NCBI GenBank assembly: GCA_904063045.1
Contig: CAJFCJ010000105.1
Span: forward strand, 1 to 39,320
Origin: Dimorphilus gyrociliatus
Taxonomy: Eukaryota > Animalia > Annelida
DNA: 39,320 bases
Direction of reading: 5' to 3'
Shown: piece after piece, positions 2,606 through 31,669 of the stretch
Layout of the letters: the number at the start of each line of letters is the position of its first letter
Position numbering within the stretch: the stretch's first letter is position 1
The notes under the pieces: generated by a model
The model's input: only the letters and a program-made list of their open reading frames with translations
The model's database searches: none
Told to the model about the DNA's origin: nothing
Made by a program: the position numbers and the translations under genes

Positions 2606-5181
2606 ATGAAAAATCCTCTTTTAAAATATCATGCAAAACAGATTAAAGCTGTTCTAGAAAATGATAAATTATTTAATAAAAAATTACAAGAGTTAAAAAT
2701 TAATTTAAATTGCTTTGATGATAGCAGCAAACTGTTGAAAATTATAGAAAGTATTCAATTCTTTGATAAGAAATATACTGAAATTGAAAATTTGATTAAA
2801 AATACATGGAAAAATGTAATTATTGAAAGAAAATATTCTTTTCAAATGGAATTTGAATTCTATCCTAAATTTTCATTGAACAATTAAAATTCTTCTAATA
2901 TTAAATTTGATGATATATTGACACCAACTCAACTTTTATTGAGAAATTGTAATAAAAATCAAGAAAATTTTGGCTTATTTTTCAAAGTTGAACAATTTTT
3001 AAATTATTTAAAATTTTTAAAAAATTTCAATCAAATAGTTTGAAAGAATTATATATTGAAAATTGTGGATTGGCAGAAGCGATTGAAATCAATTGTCCAA
3101 ATTTAAAAATATGTAAACTGGTAAAAGTTGGTAGAAAATTATATTTGAAACAATTTTTTAAAGACAATTTCAAATTACAAAAATTAAATATATCTGGAAT
3201 TTCATTATTAAATGATCTGGGAAAGAATTTCTTTGAAATATTAAGTAATTTGACAATATCATTATCATCTCTCAAATGTAATGATTGTTAAATGATTACA
3301 AAATCAAATGATTTACTTAATTTACTTAAAAATCACAATTGTTTAAATACTTTAGAAATGGATGGTAATCAAGTTGATTTGATTGATAAATTTGTTGATA
3401 CTTTGGATTTTTTTACATCTATTTTTTCAGCACATTGTCTAAAAGTATTAAAATTACCAATTATTAAATGCCCAAATAATCAAATAACAATGAAGACAGC
3501 AACAAATATTGATGATTTCTTGATGATAAAACTGGATTTGATATATCTAGATTTTGGTGGAAATTCTCTAGATAATATCTTGATATGTAATTTTATTAAA
3601 AAGCTAACTTCTTTTTCAATTAGTTTAAAAATCCTTGCTACAAATTGCTACAATTCAACTTTTAATGACTTATTGAATGATATTAATTTCTCTAATTATT
3701 CTAATTTTAAATATTTGAAAATTGTACATTCAAATTCAAATTTAAATTTGAAAGAGTTTAATGAACTTTTCACTTGTCCAAATAAGATCCTATCTCTAAA
3801 TGTTATAAGAAAAATTCACCTAAAAAATTGTCAACTATCTGATGATTTTTTAACAACATTGACAAATATTTGGACTGAACTAACTTCAATAAAAACTTTG
3901 GATATAAGTTATAATGAATTTACAAAGGATACTAGTTTAAATTTTTTAAAGATGATTAAACATGAAAAATTTCAACAATTTGATAATTTGTATGTACTTT
4001 GTTGTATTGTAATTGTAGGAAGTCCTAGCTCGTCACTATCAAATTCATCCTCTCCAATCATTTACCAATGTGCCAAAGTACTGGTCCAAATAGAACCTTT
4101 CAAGTTCGTCCACAAGTAGTCTTAATAAATGTAATTCCAGTAAAAATTAACCAACAAACACCAGTATTTCATTCAAAGAATATGTATTTGAGTAAATGAG
4201 TTTCTAGTTCTAAACAAGCAAGTTTGAACAACCAGCTGATGGTTAGAAAACTGAACTGACTACTGTTAAATTCGTAGGGTTTATATACTTTTCCAATAGT
4301 TCACAGTTCACAGATAAAAATATTCACACAAAGAAATGTAACAATTTGGATAAAGGGAAAGTTCAAATATACTTCCATGTTTGTTACTTTTTCTTTATCT
4401 TGGAGAACTTTTGCTCCCTATTTTAGTAGGTCAGAAAGTTGCCTAAGATGTAACAATTATTAATAGAAGTTGGATTGATTCCAAAACACAAAAATAGGAA
4501 AAGGTCAACTTGATGCCGTTTTAATATACAACAAATTATTAATAATAATTGTTTGTGTAAGATAATATGTTTCTGTGTAAAGGACTGGTAGGATAAAAGT
4601 ATTAAACTTAATCATCTAATATAGTATTGTGCATACAATACTGTTGAAAAGTGACAATAATCTAAAAACTCCAAATATAAATAGAATAGTGGAAGATATA
4701 ATTAATATTCATTAAATATGATGTGTATAATAATTTGGGTTAACATCTAGTTAGTTTAAATAGTGTATGTTGTAGTTTTAGGCGTGTAGAGTACTTTATA
4801 ATACTCTTTCAATATTGCTTTCCATTGATGAATGAAATGTAACAATTTGGGTGTATTGTGTGAATTTGTGAGCCTGGTTACAAGCTTATGTGTTTAGTAC
4901 CTACAAACTGCCTAAATGTGTACATTGTATATGCATCATTGTAATTGGAAAAATACGGATATATCTGAATATTTGAATTCAATTATGGAATTAAAATTTT
5001 TAAGAATTTTCAATTCAAAATCAAATGCTGCTAAACTGGTATCACATGCTGTTGTTGATGTAAATAATTCTTTTGAAAACAATTGACAGCATCTTAAATT
5101 GGACATTAAATAGTAATATTTTCTTTTTTTGCCACTCATCAAAACAAATACCAAGTGAATTTGATGATATTCACAAGTTTT
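2606..5181 (+). pseudogene. NLR paralog lacking NACHT (N-terminal domain plus LRRs), interrupted by a solo LTR
   Basis: N-terminus (MKNPLLKYH..NTWKNVIIERK..PKF..TPTQL) aligns with the NLR at 34723 (IRNNLLNYH..NTWTILMKERK..PKF..TPIQL). LRRs (VLKLPII, YLDFGGNSL, TLDISYN, LYMHHCN) align with 37200-37900. In-frame stops at 2885 and 3289, frameshift near 3030, LTR insertion at 3993. Confidence 0.8.
3993..4924 (-). mobile_element. Solo LTR (subfamily A), 932 bp
   Basis: TGTAC...GTACA termini; 5-bp TSD TTGTA (3988-3992 and 4925-4929); homologous end to end with 6416-7381; TATATAAA conserved on the minus strand. Confidence 0.9.
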
Positions 5182-5715: not shown

Positions 5716-6415
5716 CTTCTAAGTGGCTTACTCCTGATTCAGTTCTATTTGGACCAGTACTTACCTATAACCCCAGCAGGAAAGTACCTTATTATATTTA
5801 ATAATATTCTTCTTATCATTATAGAAAGGAAATATAAGTTTTTCATTTGAAATCTCAGAAATATGATCACTTTAATGTGGTAGGCCTATTTATGGAAAGG
5901 CACAAGCATCAGTTATGTTCAAAAAATTTACCCTGATCATTGAGTAGTGTCACTTTTAACCAGATTTTAACTATAAGGGTTTGCTATGTAAAGAAGGTAT
6001 TTATCATCTCTCAATGATTTATAATCTAGCTAATAGAAAAGATACTAAAAAGGCAACTTTTATTTAGTTCAAGACTACATACCTTCAGAGTTGGATTGCC
6101 TGCATAATGACAAATCTAATATGAGATTAAATAATTTTAATATTTCGAATGCACCCTTAAATGTCTTGATCTATATAAGACAATATCAGGTTGTAAAGCT
6201 ATTTCATTGGCAATTTTAAAAACTTTTGGAGAATATGATTGTTTTTTAAAATGTACTTGCATACCAAAATATTTTCAAATATTCAATATTCAAAAGTATA
6301 TTCAATGGTTACAATTAGTAATTATAAATATATATATATAGATATCACAAATATAAAAAACCATTATTGAACTGAATTTTTATTTCTAGATGATTTTAAA
6401 AAAGATTTTTGTGGA

Positions 6416-11075: not shown

Positions 11076-12561
11076 TTAACTAGTGGCGCCATCTCCCAAC
11101 AAATTATTAATGTCTTTAAGTTGATCTTCATTCAGATTGCAATTATCAAAATTTATAGTTTTTAAGGAGTTAGAAGATTTAAAGAGTCTGTTATAAATGT
11201 TTAAAAATCCATTATCTCCCATATCCGGATTAAATTCCATATAAATTCTCTCAATTTTTGAACAACCGTTCAATAATTGTCCAATAAGTACACTTTGATT
11301 CTCATTCAAATTACAAAATCCAAAAGCAATCTCTTTTAAAGTATTTGATGATTGAACTAATCCTTTGCAAATCGTTGATAATCCATTTCCCATTTCTTGA
11401 TTCCAACCCAGATTTATTGATTCTAGTTTGGAACAATTTTTCAATAAATTTCAAATACTTTTACATTGATCACCATTCAAATTGCATGAACAAAAATTGA
11501 TAGATTTTAATGATATTGATGATTGATGAAGATAATTGCTAAGATTTAATAAACTGTAGGCCATTTTGTCATTTTGCTTTAGATTAATTGTTTCTATATT
11601 CGAGGAGTTCTTTATTAAATTCCCTAAATGTTTGCATTGAAGACTGTTCAAGTTACAATCCACCTATTGACTTCTTGTAGGGTTTTTGAAGATTTTAAAA
11701 GTTGTTTCCAAGCATCAATGAGTATGCTTCCTAAATTTTTGTTTTCAGATAAATTGATACTTTGAACGTTGACACAACTCTTTAAATATTGCTTAAAAAT
11801 TTCCTTCTCGTATTCAGAGTTGCATTTCTTAGTAAAATCTATAAATAATGGATCGTCTCTTGGGAGATTGGGTCTATAATTTAAATTTTCAATTACATAA
11901 TCAATTTTGAAATCATCTAATATTATAATTTTTGGCATTTTGTCAAGAAATTCTTTTAAAGTATCAATTAGATTATCTTCCATAATATTCTCATTAAATT
12001 GATCCAAAAGATTTTCTCTGTAGGATCTAACATCATTAAAATCTCGAGAAATATTCTTAAAAATGTTGTTCAACTTTTCAGTGTAAAAACTATGAAGATT
12101 TTGTATTTGTTTTGAAATTTCTTCATTATTTCCTCTTTCTTCCTTAACACAAGATTTAATTAAATCATTTATATTTTCTTGTTTTGTCATTGACCTAATT
12201 TCGCAATAACAATGATCTTCTGTTAAACACTGTGTACATAGATTTTCAACATTATGAGTTTTACAATAAAGACTTGTTTCTTTTTGATGTTTTTCACATA
12301 ATTCATCATTCAGATATATTTTTTGAAATGATTGATAAAGAATATTTTTCTTTAATTATCAATTTCTCTTCTTGACAATTGAAAATTTTCTCTACAAACT
12401 GGACAGGTCATTACTGAATCATTTTTCACTAGTTTAATTAGACAATTAAGGCAAAATGTATGTTGACAAGGTAAGAATCTTGGATCCTTTTCAACCCATG
12501 GTTCTAAACAAATAGCACAAAGAAGATGCTCTTCTTTAATAAAATATCCACTGGCAGCCAT
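11076..12561 (-). pseudogene. TRIM-like RING - B-box2 - coiled-coil - RNI-type LRR gene
   Basis: RING CAIC..PCQHTFCLNC..CPVC; B-box CEKH-x7-CKTH-x5-CTQC-x4-HCYC at about 12200-12300, in frame with ORF 11648-12190; then 57-aa paired LRRs. Frameshifts near 12355 and 11665; TGA at 11451-11453. Confidence 0.85.
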
Positions 12562-12869: not shown

Positions 12870-13120
12870 AAGACTATTGGTAGCTTTATCTTGTAAGATT
12901 TCATCACATTTGCTCAGAATAATCCTGATTCTCTATTTATCAACACTTCAACATATAGAACATAGACCATCTGGAAAAGAAAGAGCTTAGTTTATATTAA
13001 AATCAATTTCGAGCTCCCCTGATAAAGAAACCCAATGGACTTTATGATGACAAAGTGAGCAAACACATTGCTTCAGCTTATTAATCTTTTTTTTTTACAT
13101 CCAAAACAATATGGTAGCAT
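12870..13120 (-). pseudogene. Degenerate PHD-type first exons of a Phantom transposase
   Basis: With a +1 A correction reads MLPYCFGC-x12-CSLC-x4-H..; second exon DGLCSIC..RIILSKCDE; Cys/His spacing identical to 29380 and 24835. Confidence 0.6.
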
Positions 13121-13713
13121 TGTGGCAAAAATCTCCTTTCAGCTTCTTTAACCTCGTGGTAAGAATTTAAAAAGTCCAAACTATTCAGTCTTTTAGGAAA
13201 TTTATATGCTCACTTGCATACATGCATTGCAGCATATATAGATATAATGAAATAATATAGTAGTTAGTAACTATATATTAACTATATATACTAACAACTA
13301 TATTATTTCATATAATGAAATAATATAGTAGTTAGTAATTATTGGGTGAAAATATGTTAAATTTTCCACCAGTTTCAGTAAGACAGAAAAATTCTACTTC
13401 CTTCTCTTACTCATTAGAGGTAATGTGAAAATTTATTATTTATTATTTTCAAAGCTATATTATTTTATTAATTTTTTAACACTACAAAGGAATTTTATAA
13501 TTAAAGGTTTATATAACATCCTAACCAAAAAATTGGTAATTTTAAGTTCATTTTTATCTTTTATTTTTATTTTTACATTGTAATGCTTGTGGTAATCTTA
13601 TTATCAACTTTTAAATATATATCATCCAATCATTCTGACTTTTCTTATCAATTTCACTCTAACAAATTATTATTTAGTAAGGTTTGAAAAAGAGTATTCA
13701 CAATCTTTCAATA

Positions 13714-14722
13714 ATGGAAAACTCATGCTATATCTGCAATGATCCCTTCATAGGCAGCCAAATTAAAGGCAAATGTTGTCTTTGTTTCAAAACATGCCAT
13801 ATCAAGTGCATTCAGGGTTTGTATTATTTATGCCTTTATAATAACAATAATTCAAATAATCCAGATCCAGTGTCAATTTCACCATTATGTTTGAGTTGTT
13901 TTCAAATTTCAAAAAGAAATTGTGTTGTAATCTTAAAGAGAATAGATGAAGAAAAAGAACAAAGCATAAATGAATCCAGAGAGGAATTGAGATTATCATT
14001 TTCTTTTGATAGTATAGAAAGCATTGCTGATTGTTTAATAGGAGTTCAAAGTTTTGTGAATGAGGAGGATATTATGTTCAGTAATGAAATTGAAATAATA
14101 CACTGACTACAGTCACTGGTGGAGAAATCTCCAAACACATAGATTTTGCCAGTAAGAGCAGTACATTAAAAGCAAAAGAAAAGCTACTACAACATGGATT
14201 TGCTCAGTTCGGAATAAATCTAACAAATGTTCTGCTACCATCATCCAAAGAGAAAAAAATTTTCATTGTGGAAGAAAAAACCATAACCACTCACCATTGA
14301 AAAATGCTGAACAGCAGATTGTCATTAGAAATGATATCAAAGAGAAATCTGCTAATGATATTAAATCATCAGGAAAAAGAATTGCTAAGGAAATTCTTTT
14401 GAAACATTCTCATGGAAAATGTAGTTTGCTCAATTGCAAAGAAGTAGCCAACTACAACAGGAGAAAAAATAGACCAGCTGAACCTGATGGTTTAAATTTT
14501 CAACTTGATTTAACTTGTGTGCCATTTGAATTTATGAAGAAAGATATTTATTCTGGCAATGAAAGAATATTAGTTTGTGCAAGTGATCATCAGTTAAAAC
14601 TCTTGTCTACTGCAAAGATATGGTACATGGATGGTACTTTCAAAATTGCAAAAGATCCATTTATTCAAATGTTTTCAATCCATGGCTTTTTAAAGAAAAA
14701 TGGAATATCTTTCAACTGCTGA
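13714..14722 (+). mobile_element. Truncated PHD-FLYWCH-MULE transposase
   Basis: CYIC-x12-CLC-x3-HIKC..CLSC finger; TWICSVRNKSNKCSA..HNH (FLYWCH) in frame with WYMDGTFKIAKDPF (first catalytic D); stop/frameshift near 14105; ends after IHGFLKK. Confidence 0.85.
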
Positions 14723-22562: not shown

Positions 22563-25320
22563 CCCAGGGTGGGAAAAAACGTCCCAGTGTGGGAAAAAAC
22601 GTCCCAAGGTTAGGAAAAAATGTCCCAAGGTTGGGAAAAACAAGTAGTGGGATAAGATATTTGAATTTTAAAAAAGATTGCTCTATTTTGGGAACCAATG
22701 GCAATATACTGAGAATATAATAATTAATAATGAATATATGTTTATTAAAATGTATTAAAAATGAAAAAAGCTAAGAATGTTATACAAAGTTTAAAAGTTA
22801 CTAGAATAAAGTATAAAGTATGTTAAGACACTGAGAATTATTTTGAATAGATTAATGCAATCTTCTGCAAGAGGACAGCAGATGTAATCATTCCCAATTT
22901 GTATTCATCCCAAACAGCAAATACTTGGTTCTGCTTCTGGATGACACTTTTCTTCTGATACTTCTTTAGCCTTTTTTCTGATAGAAGTTTCTCTACAACT
23001 GGAATAAGACTTGATTCCTGTTTTAAAATATCTATGAGCATATAAAATGACCCTTTTGCAGGAGTCTTTTCATTATTCTTCTGTGCCATCCTTCAACATC
23101 ATTGTTGGTCCTGATGGCAAGACCAAATACAGACCAACAATTTGGTGTCCAAATTGAATGCTTAATCCAAGTACTTTCAATGTATTGGAATAAATCCAAA
23201 AATTCATTTCTCTCAAAGGCCTCATCTTTTAGCATGTAGAAACTGTTTAGAATGGCTTCATCTGGAAGAAAAGGTAATGCCAAAACTTGTTTCAGCAGTC
23301 CTGCCTTCTTCTTTTCCATATTATATTGTTGTGTGTATCCCAAATTCTACAATAATTTAATAATAAGGCCAACCACTGAATTTAAATATAAACTTACTTG
23401 AATTTTTCTGTAGACAGCTTGTGTCCAATGGAAGACACAACCTTGAATAGGAATATTAGGGTAAACTGAGTTAAGAGCACTCCATATACCTAATTCAAAA
23501 TCAACTACAAATTTGTCAGGTTGAAAACCATTTGTCAATTTTTGAATCTCCTTTTGATAAGATGAAGTTAATGAAACAGAATTAAGCAACCAAATCATAC
23601 TTACTTTAAGAATCATTTTGTACACTTTTTTTTTCTTTGATGTTAAAAAAGGAAATGCTAATGGAATTTGTTTTGCTTCTCCATCATTTTTAATAAAAGA
23701 ATGAACAGAAAAAAGCTGTACAAATGGATCCTTCACAGCCTTGAAAGTGCCATCTAAATACCATACTTTACTTTTACATAATAAAGACAGCTGGTGCTTA
23801 GAAGCAAATAGTAAAACTCTTTGATTTCTTACAACAATATCACTTTGAAGAAAATCATCTGGTATAAATGTTGTATTAAGTTCAAAATCAATTTCGTTTG
23901 GTTCTTTAGGCCTTGATTTTTGCCTATTGATATTGGCTAATCTCCTCAGATTTTCCAGTTTTGGTAGGTTATTTTCACTTTTATTTAAATTAATTAATAG
24001 ATCTTCAGCAATTGCTCTTCCAGATGACTTGATGTCTGCATTACAGATTGCTCTCAATTCTTTTCTAGCAGAAATATTCACAATAAGGCTTTTCCTTTTG
24101 TTATGATTGTGTTCATGTTTACTCTTTATGAAAATATTTCCTTTTTGTTGAATAATAACTGGACATTGAATATTCTTATTTCTAACAGAACATCTCCAGA
24201 TGGTTCTCTTGTCACTTCTAGATTTTATATTAAAAGCATAGCCATTGTTGGTCAAAATATCTTTCCCTTTTTGACTTCCACCAATAATAATATGAAATTT
24301 GTCTGAGCTTTCCGTATTCTCATTATTTTCAGTTTCATTTTCATGCAATAAATTTTCCTCCATATTAGAAGTATTGCTAACTTCTTTAAGACTACAATTG
24401 TCTTTAACCATATTATTATGAGCACAACTCAGAGCAGCTTTTACAATAGGATCATCATTGATCACATCTGATAAACTAATGAGACAATATCTTTCACTCA
24501 AACTTTTGCATGAAGAACACTTATCATCTTTCATTTCTGTAATATTAAGCAAAGTTAAATACATGTATGTTTTACATAGTAAATATCACCTTTACAGATA
24601 TGATGACAAAGTGAACATGTAGTTTCTTGAATCCTGAACTTTTCTGCACAATTATTGCAAAATACTCTTTCAGATTCTAAATTGAAAATGAAAAAAGTGA
24701 ATAATTTAATAAAAACATATAAAGAGACAGACCTTTGATGCATTTGGCATGGACATAATCTTGGCAGTCATTGCATTTCATCTTTCTCTGTCTGCCATAA
24801 AATCTTTTATTACAATTAATACAAACAGGTGCCATTACTAAGTTTCTGCAAAAATAAATTCACTTTCAACTATCAAATATGGCTGCCTATACAAAAATTA
24901 TAAATAATAACTCACTGGAAAGAAGTGTTCTTAAAAAATGTATAATCTTGTACTATTCAATAAACTAAATCAATACCAGAGTTTCAATGCTTAAAAAACA
25001 AATTAGCCTGAAAATATGCCAAGAAATGCAAAATTTATCTTTCACTTACAGACAAGACAAGGAAATAACTCATTTCTCTTTTAATAGCATTACATAATTC
25101 AGAGAAAACTGGTAAAAACATCACAATACATATCCCTTTCTTTAAAAATATTAATATTTTATTCTATAAATGAAATAAACAGCAAAGAGAAAAACATTTC
25201 TGATTATAAGTATAAATAATTATGCCAAGTATATCTTTTGCCAGGCATAGGACGTTTTTTCCTGTCCTGGGATGTCTTTTCCCAGGGACGTTTTTTCCCA
25301 AGGACGTTTTTTCCCGACCC
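22513..25320 (-). mobile_element. Near-complete Phantom/MULE element (GGGAAAAAACGTCC family)
   Basis: Inverted repeat arrays at about 22513-22645 and 25238-25320; no matching TSD in the flanks. Confidence 0.85.
22838..24835 (-). CDS. PHD-FLYWCH-MULE transposase (5 exons, one frameshift)
   Basis: MAPVCINC-x12-CNDC-x4-HAKC|ESERVFCNNC; introns 24677-24732, 24537-24589, 23551-23604 and 23347-23397; WYLDGTF, VVDFE, CVFH and TNNDVEGWH present; 1-bp frameshift near 23073. Confidence 0.85.
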
Positions 25321-28100: not shown

Positions 28101-28784
28101 ATATTAAAGGTATAGTTTGTCTATAAAAAATATTGCATAACTCATTTTCTATTCTTGGATTTTTTGTCTGCAGGAAATTAAAAAAATGACTAATGATTCA
28201 ATGCCAGAGGAGGTAGTTGTTGATTTTGAAAAAGGACTCTGGAAAGCTCTGAAATCTATTTATCCAGCAGCATCCATAAGAGGGTGTGCATTTCATTGGA
28301 GCCAAGCTGTGTATAGAAAGATTCAGGTAAGATGAATATGTTAATATTGCTACAGTTTAGCTTTTATTATCTATATCTTTAGAATTTGGGATACAGTAAA
28401 GATTATCAATCAAACATGAATAATGGAAGGTCAACATTAAAAAAGATATTAGCATTGCCATTTCTTCCTTCTACTACAATACCAACAATCTTTAATTTAA
28501 TTGAGAATGGTATGGGAGCAAGAAACAAATATGCTGATTTGTTAGATTATGTTCGATCTCAATGGATTGAAAATTCAATTTGGCAACCTCAACAATGGTC
28601 TATGTTTGGTTATAGTGTCAGAACAAGTAATGAAGTTGAAGCTTGGCACAGAAGATTGAACAGTAAAGTCTTAGCCAAAGGCTCCTTTTACCAATTGGTA
28701 GATGAACTAAATAAGGAAGCTTCTCTTATTGATGTTTATAAAAAACTTTTATCTGAGAGAAAGTTGAAGAACACCAAAAGAAAG

Positions 28785-31491
28785 GGGTCGGGTGTGAACG
28801 TACCTGGGTGCGAACGTACCCGGGTGCGAACGTACCCTGGGCGGGTGCGAACGTACCCAGGTACGTTCGCACCCTATTTTTATATTTATTTTATTTTTGA
28901 ATTTTTGAATAAACATGTACATTGACACCCTTTTTTCCTTCTGTTCCTTCATTATATATTTGTTAATATATTGATTAGATAGAATGCAGATATTAAATAG
29001 AATACATATCCCATCAATATTAAATTACTACTTTAAAAGAAAATGTTGTTGAAAGTGAAATAGCAGCCATTTTAATAGTGATAGTTTTATTAAATAAACT
29101 TTCACTTGGAATATTTATCCTTGCAAAAGTAAAGCTATATTTACTGAATAAATTTGGACAAAGTTCTTCTTGGAAGCTTCAACAGAAGTGAGTATTTATA
29201 TCTAATCATTGAGATTGTTGATTCATGATATTTTGATGTAATATACTATATTCAATTGTGAAAAAGCTGAATATTTTTCATAAATAAAATTTCAGCCATT
29301 TTGAATATTTGGAAAGGAAATTTATTGATAACTGGAAATATTTTTAGATAACCATCTACATTTGATTGAAGATTAAAAAATGGCTTTCAAATGTCACAAT
29401 TGTCATTCAACAATTTATGGAAGGCAAAAATATTTGAAATGCAGCCTTTGTAAGAATCTTATTCATAGGAAATGCACAGGTATGTAACTCTTTAATCAGC
29501 TTTCATGTAATTATATTTTTTAACATATTCTTATAGAAACACATAACATACCAATTTGCAAACCTTGTAACAAAAGAAAATGTACTGTCATGCTCAAGAA
29601 GTTAACTAATCTGGAAATTCATCAATTCAAAGTAAATTCTGAAGAAAGCTTTATTGATGAAAGAAATAAGATTGCTGCAGTTGAGGAATCAATATTGGAG
29701 GATGAAAATCATGTTCTTTCAGAATGCCAATCAATGGACCTAGACTCTTTGGAGGAAGTTGAAGAGAATGCTGAAGAATATTGTGAATCATCCACAAAAA
29801 GTGATTTTGAGATTGTAAAAGGAGGAAGTAGAAAGGGACATGACATTTTACTGAATGATGGATATTCTTTTGTTGTTAAACATAAAACACCATCAAGTAC
29901 TATTTGGGTGTGCAGTGTGAGAAGTAAGAAGAAAAGATGTGTGGCCAGAATAAGACAAAATGGAAATTTATTTCTCAAAGGCAATTTGGAACATAATCAC
30001 AACAGAAAAAAGAATTTAGAAGTGGATATTAAAGTGAAAACAGATTTGAAAATTGTTTGCAGAAGTGATAATCAAACATCTGGAAGAAGCATTGCTGAAA
30101 AAGTTCTTCTATCCTATGAACCCAATGCAACTTGTCTTCCTGATATCAACTATTTGAAGAGAATGGCAAACTCAAATAGACAAAAGTTTAGGCCAGTGGA
30201 ACCTAAAGTGTACAACTTTAATTTAGATGAAACATTTTTGCCTGATGAATTTTTGCAGAAAGATATTTGTGAAAATGGAGAAAGAATTTTAATCTTTGCA
30301 ACAAACCATCAGCTGAATTTATTATCAAAATCCAACTGTTGGTACATTGATGGTACTTTCAAGATTGTAAAAGAACCATTTTATCAACTTGTCACTATTC
30401 ACTCATTTGTTAAGAAGAGTGGTGATATGAAGCAAGTTCCTCTTGTTTTTATTTTTCTGACTTCAAAGCATACCAAAGCATACTTACAAGCATTTCAAGT
30501 AAATATTTCATATTATCTCTTCAAAAGTGATGATAAATAAAGTTGCTTTTTTGTAGCATATCAACAATCTTATCAATGATTTTCATCCAAAAAGAATTAC
30601 AATGGATTTTGAAAAAGGACTATGGAAAGCATTATCAAAAGTATATCCCCTCACTGAATTTCAAGGTTGTGTATTTCATTTCACACAAGCAGTATACAGG
30701 AAAATACAAGTCAGTTACATTCAAATATATATAACATTATCTATTAAATAACTTATATTATTGAATAGGCTCTTGGCTATGTAAAGAAATACAAAGAAAA
30801 AGGAAATGATTGGAAAGATTTCAGAAAATTGATGGCTCTGCCATTCTTGCCAGCACATATTATTCAACCAACATTTGACAGCATAAATGCAGAACTTTGT
30901 GAAAAAAATAGATTTTTGGACCTGCTGCAATACTTCCAAACAAACTGGATCAAAAATAAATTATGGAAACCAAATAACTGGTCAGTTTTTGGTTTGTCTA
31001 TTAGGACCAATAATGATTGTGAAGGATGGCATCAAAGAATGAATAGTAAGCTGCCTGCTAAAGGTTCTTTTTACATGCTGGTTGATGAGCTAAAAAAAGA
31101 GTCTGAGTTGATTGCAGTTTATGAGAAATTACTGTCAGAAAAAAGGATTTACAAACATCAAAAGAAAAAGTATATTGACATCCAAAAGAAAATTTTTGAT
31201 TTATGGGATGATTTCAAGTTGAACAAATTGACATCAATTGATCTATTAATGCAGACATCCCATATCTACTCTCCAGCATAAATATCATTTGTCAAGCTTT
31301 ATTGTTTTTTAGTATAATATTTAGTCTTTTAAATACATACTTTTAGATTTATAGCTAAATCTTTTATTCAAAAATTCAAAAATAAAATAAATATAAAAAT
31401 AGGGTGCGAACGTACCTGGGTACGTTCGCACCCGCCCAGGGTACGTTCGCACCCGGGTACGTTCACACCCAGGTACGTTCGCACCCCAACT
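28785..31491 (+). mobile_element. Complete Phantom-like Mutator element, 2707 bp
   Basis: 129-bp TIRs (28785-28913 and 31363-31491, about 5 mismatches) built from GGGTGCGAACGTACC units; 11-bp TSD CCAAAAGAAAG (28774-28784 and 31492-31502). Confidence 0.95.
29380..31281 (+). CDS. Intact PHD-FLYWCH-MULE transposase, join(29380-29479, 29537-30498, 30557-30709, 30769-31281), 575 aa
   Basis: GT-AG introns of 57, 58 and 59 bp keep the frame; CHNC-x12-CSLC-x4-HRKC-x8-CKPC; FLYWCH IWVCSVR..C..HNH; D (WYIDGTF), D (TMDFE), CVFH, E (NDCEGWH). Confidence 0.92.
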
Positions 31492-31669
31492 CCAAAAGAA
31501 AGAATATTTGAAATTACTGGTTAAAATATTCAAATTATGGGATGATTATGATTTAGGGTTAGGAACAGCAATGGATCTATTGGAAAAAGTATCAAATATA
31601 TATGTATCATAACTTGCATATTAACCTCTCTTGTCTAGCCCTGTAGTTTAATTCTTGATGTTTTTGGTG

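Follow-up and report, generated by a model that had tools for sequence, protein, structure and literature searches.

What does a small zinc finger do at the front of a transposase? This question is raised by a Mutator element of the annelid Dimorphilus gyrociliatus, which occupies positions 28784-31492 (2709 bp) of contig CAJFCJ010000105.1 (NCBI GenBank assembly GCA_904063045.1). We analysed positions 1 to 39,320 of the forward strand; this whole stretch of 39,320 nucleotides is hereafter referred to as the window, and coordinates without another label are window positions. The best explanation of the locus, which we hold to be reasonably probable as a whole, is an autonomous cut-and-paste transposon of the Mutator-like element (MULE) superfamily that bears a FLYWCH domain and is Phantom-like. 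Its predicted transposase would consist, in order, of a 44-residue C4HC3 cross-brace finger, a short basic patch, an acidic linker, a FLYWCH domain of the WRKY-GCM1 type and a MULE core with the Asp-Asp-Glu (DDE) catalytic triad. The finger would be the shortened descendant of a Pygopus-type PHD that was ancestral to a marine-metazoan clade of PHD-FLYWCH-MULE transposases. In its shortened, basic form it would more likely bind nucleic acid, or assemble the transposase on the subrepeat-rich ends, than read methylated histone H3.

The element is bounded by terminal inverted repeats (TIRs) of about 130 bp (28784-28913, plus strand; 31363-31492, minus strand), close to the 129 bp first predicted, in which 124 nt are inverted copies with 98% identity (28790-28913 and 31363-31486) and are joined by imperfect 6-nt tips. 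The TIRs are arrays of 15-16-bp subrepeats, presumably the binding sites of the transposase: the 5' TIR comprises four direct 15-nt subrepeats (28790-28857), one inverted subrepeat (28860-28874) and an AT-rich remainder, and the 3' TIR is its mirror. Identical 9-bp target-site duplications (TSDs; CAAAAGAAA) lie at 28775-28783 and 31493-31501, and insertion yields duplications of this length. A whole-genome search recovered at least 17 full-length copies with 99.3-99.9% identity, as well as truncated and older copies (79-96% identity), and the flanks contain perfect 9-bp TSDs in 16 of the 17 full copies. The long TIRs and the 9-bp duplication thus agree with the definition of the MULE superfamily (long TIRs and TSDs of 8-11 bp). 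The TSD had originally been given as 11 bp, a length that arises from one chance matching base at each end of the real 9 bp; in every one of the 16 other copies with a TSD, the length is 9 bp. The element inserted into an older MULE from a different family and split the C-terminal part of its coding sequence (28386-28774, plus strand, resuming at 31502), and tblastn alignments of relatives span the breakpoint. Paralogous empty sites were found at two loci (L081 and L082), which are 96-98% identical to the host element and run through uninterrupted with a single copy of the 9 bp.

The coding exons of at least 11 copies are the same as those of the window copy. Private frameshifts or a nonsense codon are present in a few, and point differences among the 17 copies are almost all singletons. 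An excess of variable sites in non-coding over coding sequence among the copies rests on numbers too small to count as selection. Because of the near-identical copies, the TSDs, the empty site and the at least 11 copies with the same coding exons, we confirm the earlier view of an intact and recent Mutator element, and we are highly confident of its identity, recency and gene model. The family has multiplied very recently and may still be active.

The number of 21-nt subrepeat units in the 5' TIR differs between near-identical copies, which brings the element length to 2709-2793 bp. The variable unit lies at 28820-28842 of the window and likewise in L007, L009, L010 and L012-L016, and the 3' TIR is free of such variation. 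Elsewhere (G000, C64:190823-191802), a piece of about 980 bp is bounded by both TIRs of the element and is probably a non-autonomous copy with an internal deletion, one of few such derivatives observed.

The element contains an open coding sequence of 575 codons in four coding exons, with a non-coding 5' exon in front of it. Coding exon 1 (29380-29479, plus strand, as are all features of the gene) runs from Met1 to the first base of codon 34, that is, 33 codons plus one base, and encodes C5, C8, C21, C24, H29 and C32; an in-frame TAA stands at 29374-29376, two codons 5' of the ATG. It is followed by intron 1 (29480-29536; 57 nt, phase 1, GT..AG), whose counterparts in other families are 48-63 nt long and likewise in phase 1. 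Coding exon 2 (29537-30498) encodes C41 and C44 (29557-29568), the basic patch, the acidic linker and the FLYWCH domain (29827-30000), as well as WYIDGTF (30340-30360), the motif with the first catalytic Asp. Beyond intron 2 (30499-30556; 58 nt, GT..AG), coding exon 3 (30557-30709) holds MULE core sequence with the second catalytic Asp in MDFE (30602-30613). Intron 3 (30710-30768; 59 nt, GT..AG) precedes coding exon 4 (30769-31281), which contains NNDCEGWH with the catalytic Glu (31009-31032) and continues through the C-terminal helical part to the stop codon. Pfam FLYWCH matched exon 2 at residues 97-154 (E = 3.5e-7; 30.7 bits against a cut-off of 23.6), and Pfam MULE matched exon 2 weakly and exon 3 with 27.6 bits, at the cut-off; these MULE scores are lowered because the domain is divided across exons. 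The three large exons are colinear with full-length relatives without gaps, the D, D and E motifs are intact, one per exon, and the finger is separated from FLYWCH by an acidic-rich linker of 86 residues. The MULE domain and the D-D-E triad are therefore both present, and the predicted integrity of the open reading frame (ORF) and the triad holds.

Evidence from RNA consists of assembled contigs from two public runs, the only ones with sequence of the element, from which expression levels are not derivable: a marine metatranscriptome with RNA on record (X1) and a run without a recorded library type (X2). One X1 contig joins the last 17 nt of exon 2, the whole of exon 3 and the start of exon 4 with zero mismatches. 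The joint across intron 2 (30498>30557) is present in X2 and that across intron 3 (30709>30769) in both runs. Splicing of these two introns is thus confirmed for the element family itself, whereas that of intron 1 is confirmed in sister families only. In one sister family, exactly 57 nt are missing at intron 1 from an abundant X2 contig, which still encodes the last two cysteines; in another relative, an X1 contig is short of 58 nt there, made up of the intron and a gap of 1 nt. Contigs from X2 also show two alternative GT..AG introns in the 5' untranslated region (UTR), both from a donor at 29188 (joints 29187>29296 and 29187>29348), and the first exon, which ends at 29187 within the UTR segment 28914-29187, is for this reason taken to be non-coding. 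Two extra 5' exons had been expected in front of the large ORF: one proved to be an extra coding exon, but the second is a 53-nt upstream extension of the large exon, and the separate 5' exon is the non-coding one. An origin of the spliced contigs from intronless DNA copies is unlikely, as every genomic copy found keeps its introns and no match breaks at exon borders. One spliced X1 contig matches exons 2-4 (30557-30817) identically, which implies that the host or a very close relative was present in the environmental sample and was expressing the element.

The eight ligands of the finger (C5, C8, C21, C24, H29 and C32 from exon 1; C41 and C44 from exon 2) span the phase-1 intron, exactly at the residues originally proposed. 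The finger exon has at least 150 genomic matches, down to about 40% identity, and one design recurs in at least 10 diverged MULE families: a Met start, six ligands, a phase-1 intron of 48-63 nt and a CxxC within 5-10 residues (CxxxC in one family, L032/L033). Across 13 family representatives, which are 36-76% identical to the window copy, M1, C5, C8, C21, C24, H29, K31 and C32 are invariant and Q16 is nearly so. The ratio of nonsynonymous to synonymous substitution rates (dN/dS) of the finger exon between families is 0.1-0.5. Judged from this conservation, which goes well past what chance would give, the finger exon is real, coding and selected, and selection has kept the finger across the divergence of at least 10 local families; the element presumably needs the finger, because selection has retained it for so long.

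Similar fingers had been noted at three other places in the window. Those ending at 24835 and beginning at 13714 are the real N-termini of other MULE transposases: a finger exon of a second family at 24734-24835 (minus strand; FLYWCH-MULE body at 23032-24564, minus strand) and one of a third family at 13714-13815 (plus strand; MULE core at 14297-14722). The finger near 13120, on the other hand, is decayed and was rejected as an intact copy. It belongs to an exon (12990-13125, minus strand) that has a frameshift in an A-run and has lost the Cys after the His, and just downstream of this fragment a RING-LRR gene has its RING exon (12352-12561, minus strand). The family at 24835 also has more Cys/His-rich stretches in its next exons (24555-24743 and 23347-24564, both minus strand), where CxxC...CxxCHHxC is followed by CxxC and may form a second finger. 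No naturally intronless local finger was found among the genomic finger matches, where long frames result from intron read-through (L031, L032) or from a decayed deletion copy (L052). In the latter (G000, C190:11912-12398, minus strand), a deletion took the intron and the sixth ligand and fused the finger halves in one frame.

We collected 138 related proteins in all, drawing also on a second search, started from a coral protein, that listed 120. An N-terminal C4HC3 finger (residues 4-130) stands before FLYWCH and the DDE core in 23 of the 138 relatives, which come from cnidarians, bivalves, a shrimp, a sea cucumber and amphioxus. The spacing of these outside fingers, C-x2-C-x12-C-x2-C-x4-H-x2-C-x22/23-C-x2-C, is shared by the local finger through the sixth ligand, with RQ and HR motifs at the same positions. 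Some of the closest outside proteins (37-39% identity over the body) carry precomputed matches to PHD_Pygo, FLYWCH and MULE. BLASTP aligned the local finger with the coral finger (E = 2e-5), and hhalign aligned the local exon with the outside fingers (E = 4e-5, probability 70%). The AlphaFold model of one relative's finger (mean predicted local distance difference test score 72) matches Pygopus PHD structures with template modelling scores of 0.6-0.7 and 35-40% identity; the top 11 Foldseek hits are all Pygopus PHDs, with weak E values (about 7e-3) because the domain is small. A word search limited to the PHD of one relative (P0004) found only its own close cluster.

The local and outside fingers differ in defined ways. 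The last loop has 22 residues in the relatives' PHD versus 8 in the window finger, a loss of about 14. The Trp two residues before the zinc-binding His is invariant in all 23 outside fingers, whereas the local families have L, I, F, Y, T or K; an aromatic residue, usually Trp, also precedes the seventh ligand by two residues in most outside fingers. In a quick tree, gene models with a PHD are scattered across the whole clade, near-identical pairs differ only by whether the gene model includes the finger, and three local families group together, inside or at the base of a clade of unnamed relatives. The homology to accepted PHD fingers has moderate, not decisive, support. Taken together, the alignments make descent of the local finger from a PHD likely, in agreement with the predicted PHD-type finger, here in a shortened form. 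On the simplest reading, the ancestor of the clade had an N-terminal PHD, from whose last loop the local lineage lost about 14 residues. A metagenomic eukaryotic contig in ENA (L079) carries an intronless PHD-FLYWCH-MULE gene between TIRs of 16-nt subrepeats (3766-3850 and 6125-6182), the same end design as that of the window element.

Scans against Pfam and the PDB used exon 1 alone, that is, six of the eight ligands. All Pfam matches in the 13 families were below threshold (C1_1 in 11, PHD in eight, PHD_4 in eight and FYVE in six); the scores were 13.5 bits against 24 for PHD, 17.6 against 30.6 for PHD_4 and 18.9 against 26.5 for C1. The local finger has the PHD ligand order C-x2-C...C-x2-C-x4-H-x2-C...C-x2-C. 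A typical PHD finger has about 12 or more residues in its last loop, with a conserved aromatic (Trp) close to the seventh ligand and ahead of the His; in the local families the loop is 5-10 residues long and neither Trp position is conserved. Where PHD fingers read methylated H3K4, the Trp that precedes the His forms part of the cage. A RING-CH-like fold, which had been offered as an alternative, was rejected: RING-CH domains are spaced C-x2-C...C-x-C-x(4-7)-H-x2-C...C-x2-C, which the local C-x2-C-x4-H does not fit, and RINGv is absent among the Pfam matches of the 13 families.

These features bear on what the finger may do. The finger has a net charge of +5 to +8, and exon 1 has +5 to +7 in 11 of 12 families versus 0 to +3 in outside PHDs; the basic patch and then the acidic linker follow. 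The cross-brace finger of piggyBac, for a long time taken for a chromatin PHD, was shown to bind repeats at the ends of the transposon (PMC5861402). Like the window finger, the C-terminal cysteine-rich domain of piggyBac is a small cross-brace zinc finger on a DDE/DDD transposase; unlike it, the domain belongs to another superfamily, is C-terminal, uses C5HC2 ligands and has no demonstrated sequence relationship. Because most of the last loop is lost, the Trp is not conserved, the finger is basic and piggyBac provides a precedent, we rank a nucleic-acid or transpososome role first, with modest confidence; it is a tentative assignment that may well prove wrong.

Several observations weigh against the explanation as we have put it together. 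Nested insertions in islands of transposable elements would fit chromatin targeting too, and the hhalign probability for the PHD link is only the 70% given above. A profile of exon 1 compared with the PDB placed the C1 domains of PKC delta and theta first (E = 4.8e-6 and 1.3e-4), with the PHDs of Pygopus and KMT2D far lower, and Pfam C1_1 is the commonest match of exon 1 (best E = 1.6e-5). No contig of the exact family in X1 or X2 bridges exons 1 and 2, and splicing of intron 1 is visible only in close relatives, one of which shows the 1-nt gap. The runs themselves are assembled contigs, the library type of X2 is unrecorded, and X2 also includes unspliced pieces.

The finger could instead be a working PHD chromatin reader that tethers the transposase to nucleosomes of a given histone state and so biases where it lands, for example in closed-chromatin transposon islands. 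Its descent from a Pygopus-type PHD, a family that binds methylated H3K4, speaks for this, and so does the distribution of insertions. Four of the 17 young insertions (L001, L004, L013 and L016; contigs C105, C191, C44 and C47) were counted as lying in transposase coding sequence of other MULEs, three of them inside it and the fourth, on closer reading, about 50 bp away, and the 1.5 kb of flanking sequence covered includes MULE coding sequence in eight of the 17 young copies; given that MULEs make up 1.5% of the published genome, the binomial P for at least four of 17 is about 1e-4. Every full copy sits on a small, repeat-rich contig with a number of 35 or higher. The D. gyrociliatus genome paper, which says of the DNA transposons only that they are Mariner and MULE, places transposons in clusters in gene-free, closed-chromatin islands. 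However, the last loop has been cut from 22 to 8 residues, the Trp that is invariant before the His in the 23 outside PHDs is not conserved locally, and a net charge of +5 to +8 is unfavourable for binding the basic H3 tail. The insertion bias has equally good explanations in local hopping, in selection against insertions within genes and in an assembly split into small contigs at repeats. The original prediction of a chromatin-reading transposase that chooses its targets by histone state is thus unsupported, with the loop cut, the Trp unconserved and the finger strongly basic, and we consider a chromatin reader unlikely. We give little credence to the specific proposal that the shortened finger tethers the transposase to transposon-island chromatin, and thereby directs new copies to safe havens, other MULEs among them. 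If true, this would parallel, in a DNA transposon, the way in which chromodomains or Sir4 guide the integration of long terminal repeat (LTR) retrotransposons, and it would be inherited from an old, undescribed PHD-Mutator clade of marine animals.

A protein-protein module serving multimerisation, recruitment of host factors or regulation would resemble the Pygopus PHD, which binds BCL9 by its back face. Cross-brace fingers (PHD, RING, FYVE and C1) are mostly adaptors for proteins or ligands, the top structural matches of the ancestral domain are complexes of Pygopus PHD with the HD1 of BCL9/Legless, and the 86-residue acidic-rich linker sets the finger apart from the DNA-binding FLYWCH. The part removed from the local finger, however, is most of the loop between the sixth and seventh ligands, the site of the first helix in the relative's model (residues 47-54), and such a module seems to us improbable. 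The likeness to Pygopus PHD, which is the best structural and Pfam match of the ancestral transposase finger, is offset in the window finger by the lack of about 14 last-loop residues and of the conserved Trp.

Very improbable, in our judgement, is a C1-like domain, either a diacylglycerol/phorbol-ester or an atypical C1, in place of a PHD. It would account for the PKC delta and theta C1 domains at the top of the PDB list and for the C1_1 matches in 11 of the 13 families, but every score is below the gathering threshold. The N-terminal His that C1 requires 12 residues before the first Cys is impossible here, as Met1 is only four residues before C5 and an in-frame stop lies behind it. The fourth ligand of that zinc site comes from the C-terminal CxxC, which is the PHD/RING arrangement, and the local spacers are 12 and 8 residues versus 13-14 and 7 in C1. 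The positional homology of the local finger with the PHDs of sister transposases likewise argues against C1. The last alternative, that exon 1 is an upstream or chance ORF outside a transposase translated from the Met at 29590, would suit the missing exon 1-exon 2 junction in the exact family and the mechanical ORF list, which begins at 29590, but it is already close to refuted, as the start codon, eight ligands, intron phase and frame are kept in at least 10 families with dN/dS < 0.5, sister-family transcripts are spliced exactly there, and outside relatives carry the homologous finger and the transposase in one uninterrupted ORF.

We further compared the element with known MULE groups. The Phantom family is reportedly due to Marquez and Pritham (2010). 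Like Phantom, which includes Muta1 of Aedes aegypti, the element is an animal MULE with a single transposase gene, FLYWCH N-terminal to the DDE core, long TIRs of variable length and a TSD in the 8-10 bp range (9 bp here); unlike Phantom, it has an extra N-terminal C4HC3 finger and three coding introns. The FLYWCH domain is placed as in Phantom. Our tree covers unnamed relatives, and the single aphid FLYWCH-MULE protein in the set is a distant, long-branched outgroup. Phantom corresponds to group 20 of Dupeyron et al. 2019 (PMC6446971), and for Phantom this survey lists either no finger or one of the FLYWCH or SWIM type, with PHD given only for Rehavkus. A 2006 study mentions C-terminal PHDs in some MULE-like proteins of Ciona and C. 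elegans, and a 2026 arthropod survey makes no mention of PHD or FLYWCH.

Rehavkus (Repbase; arthropods, annelids), which was compared by description only, shares with the element its relation to MULEs, the length of the TSD (9 bp), the long TIRs, an annelid host and a PHD finger. It differs in having a minisatellite before the 3' TIR and its PHD within or C-terminal to the transposase domain. No tandem array or minisatellite was found between the stop codon and the 3' TIR of the window element (31282-31362), and membership in Rehavkus was rejected on this ground.

Close counterparts are public PHD_Pygo-FLYWCH-MULE proteins, for example from Montipora foliosa, Actinostola, Palaemon carinicauda, Saccostrea echinata, Pinctada imbricata, Holothuria leucospilota and Branchiostoma, which share the domain order and 37-39% identity over FLYWCH-MULE but have a last loop of 22-23 residues and the invariant Trp before the His. 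They are annotated solely as uncharacterised, and the one gene checked (L079) is intronless. Whether the architecture is already catalogued therefore has a divided answer: N-terminal PHD, FLYWCH and MULE occur together, with Pfam matches, in public databases and in several phyla, but the MULE literature lists no PHD for Phantom. The N-terminal PHD-FLYWCH-MULE design is, as far as searched, present in databases but undescribed in that literature, and the shortened local finger is a new form of it.

Few animal Mutator elements look so fresh, with at least 11 copies of an identical, intact and expressed coding sequence in a compact 78-Mb genome. This makes it a good candidate for a MULE that is active in an animal, and a suitable case in which to study the tolerance of a compact genome for such an element. 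It also exposes a PHD-FLYWCH-MULE clade that extends over at least five animal phyla and is absent from the MULE literature. Moreover, the shortened local finger offers a natural deletion experiment on the role of that PHD, be it end recognition or target choice.

Canonical long-loop PHDs of the Pygopus type also occur outside transposons in the worm. Two host genes (L037:1141-1782, minus strand, and L038:822-1163, plus strand; C6 and C7 of G000, both large scaffolds) end in such a finger, one of them after a Pro/Gly/Met-rich region, and this gene is likely the worm's own Pygopus.

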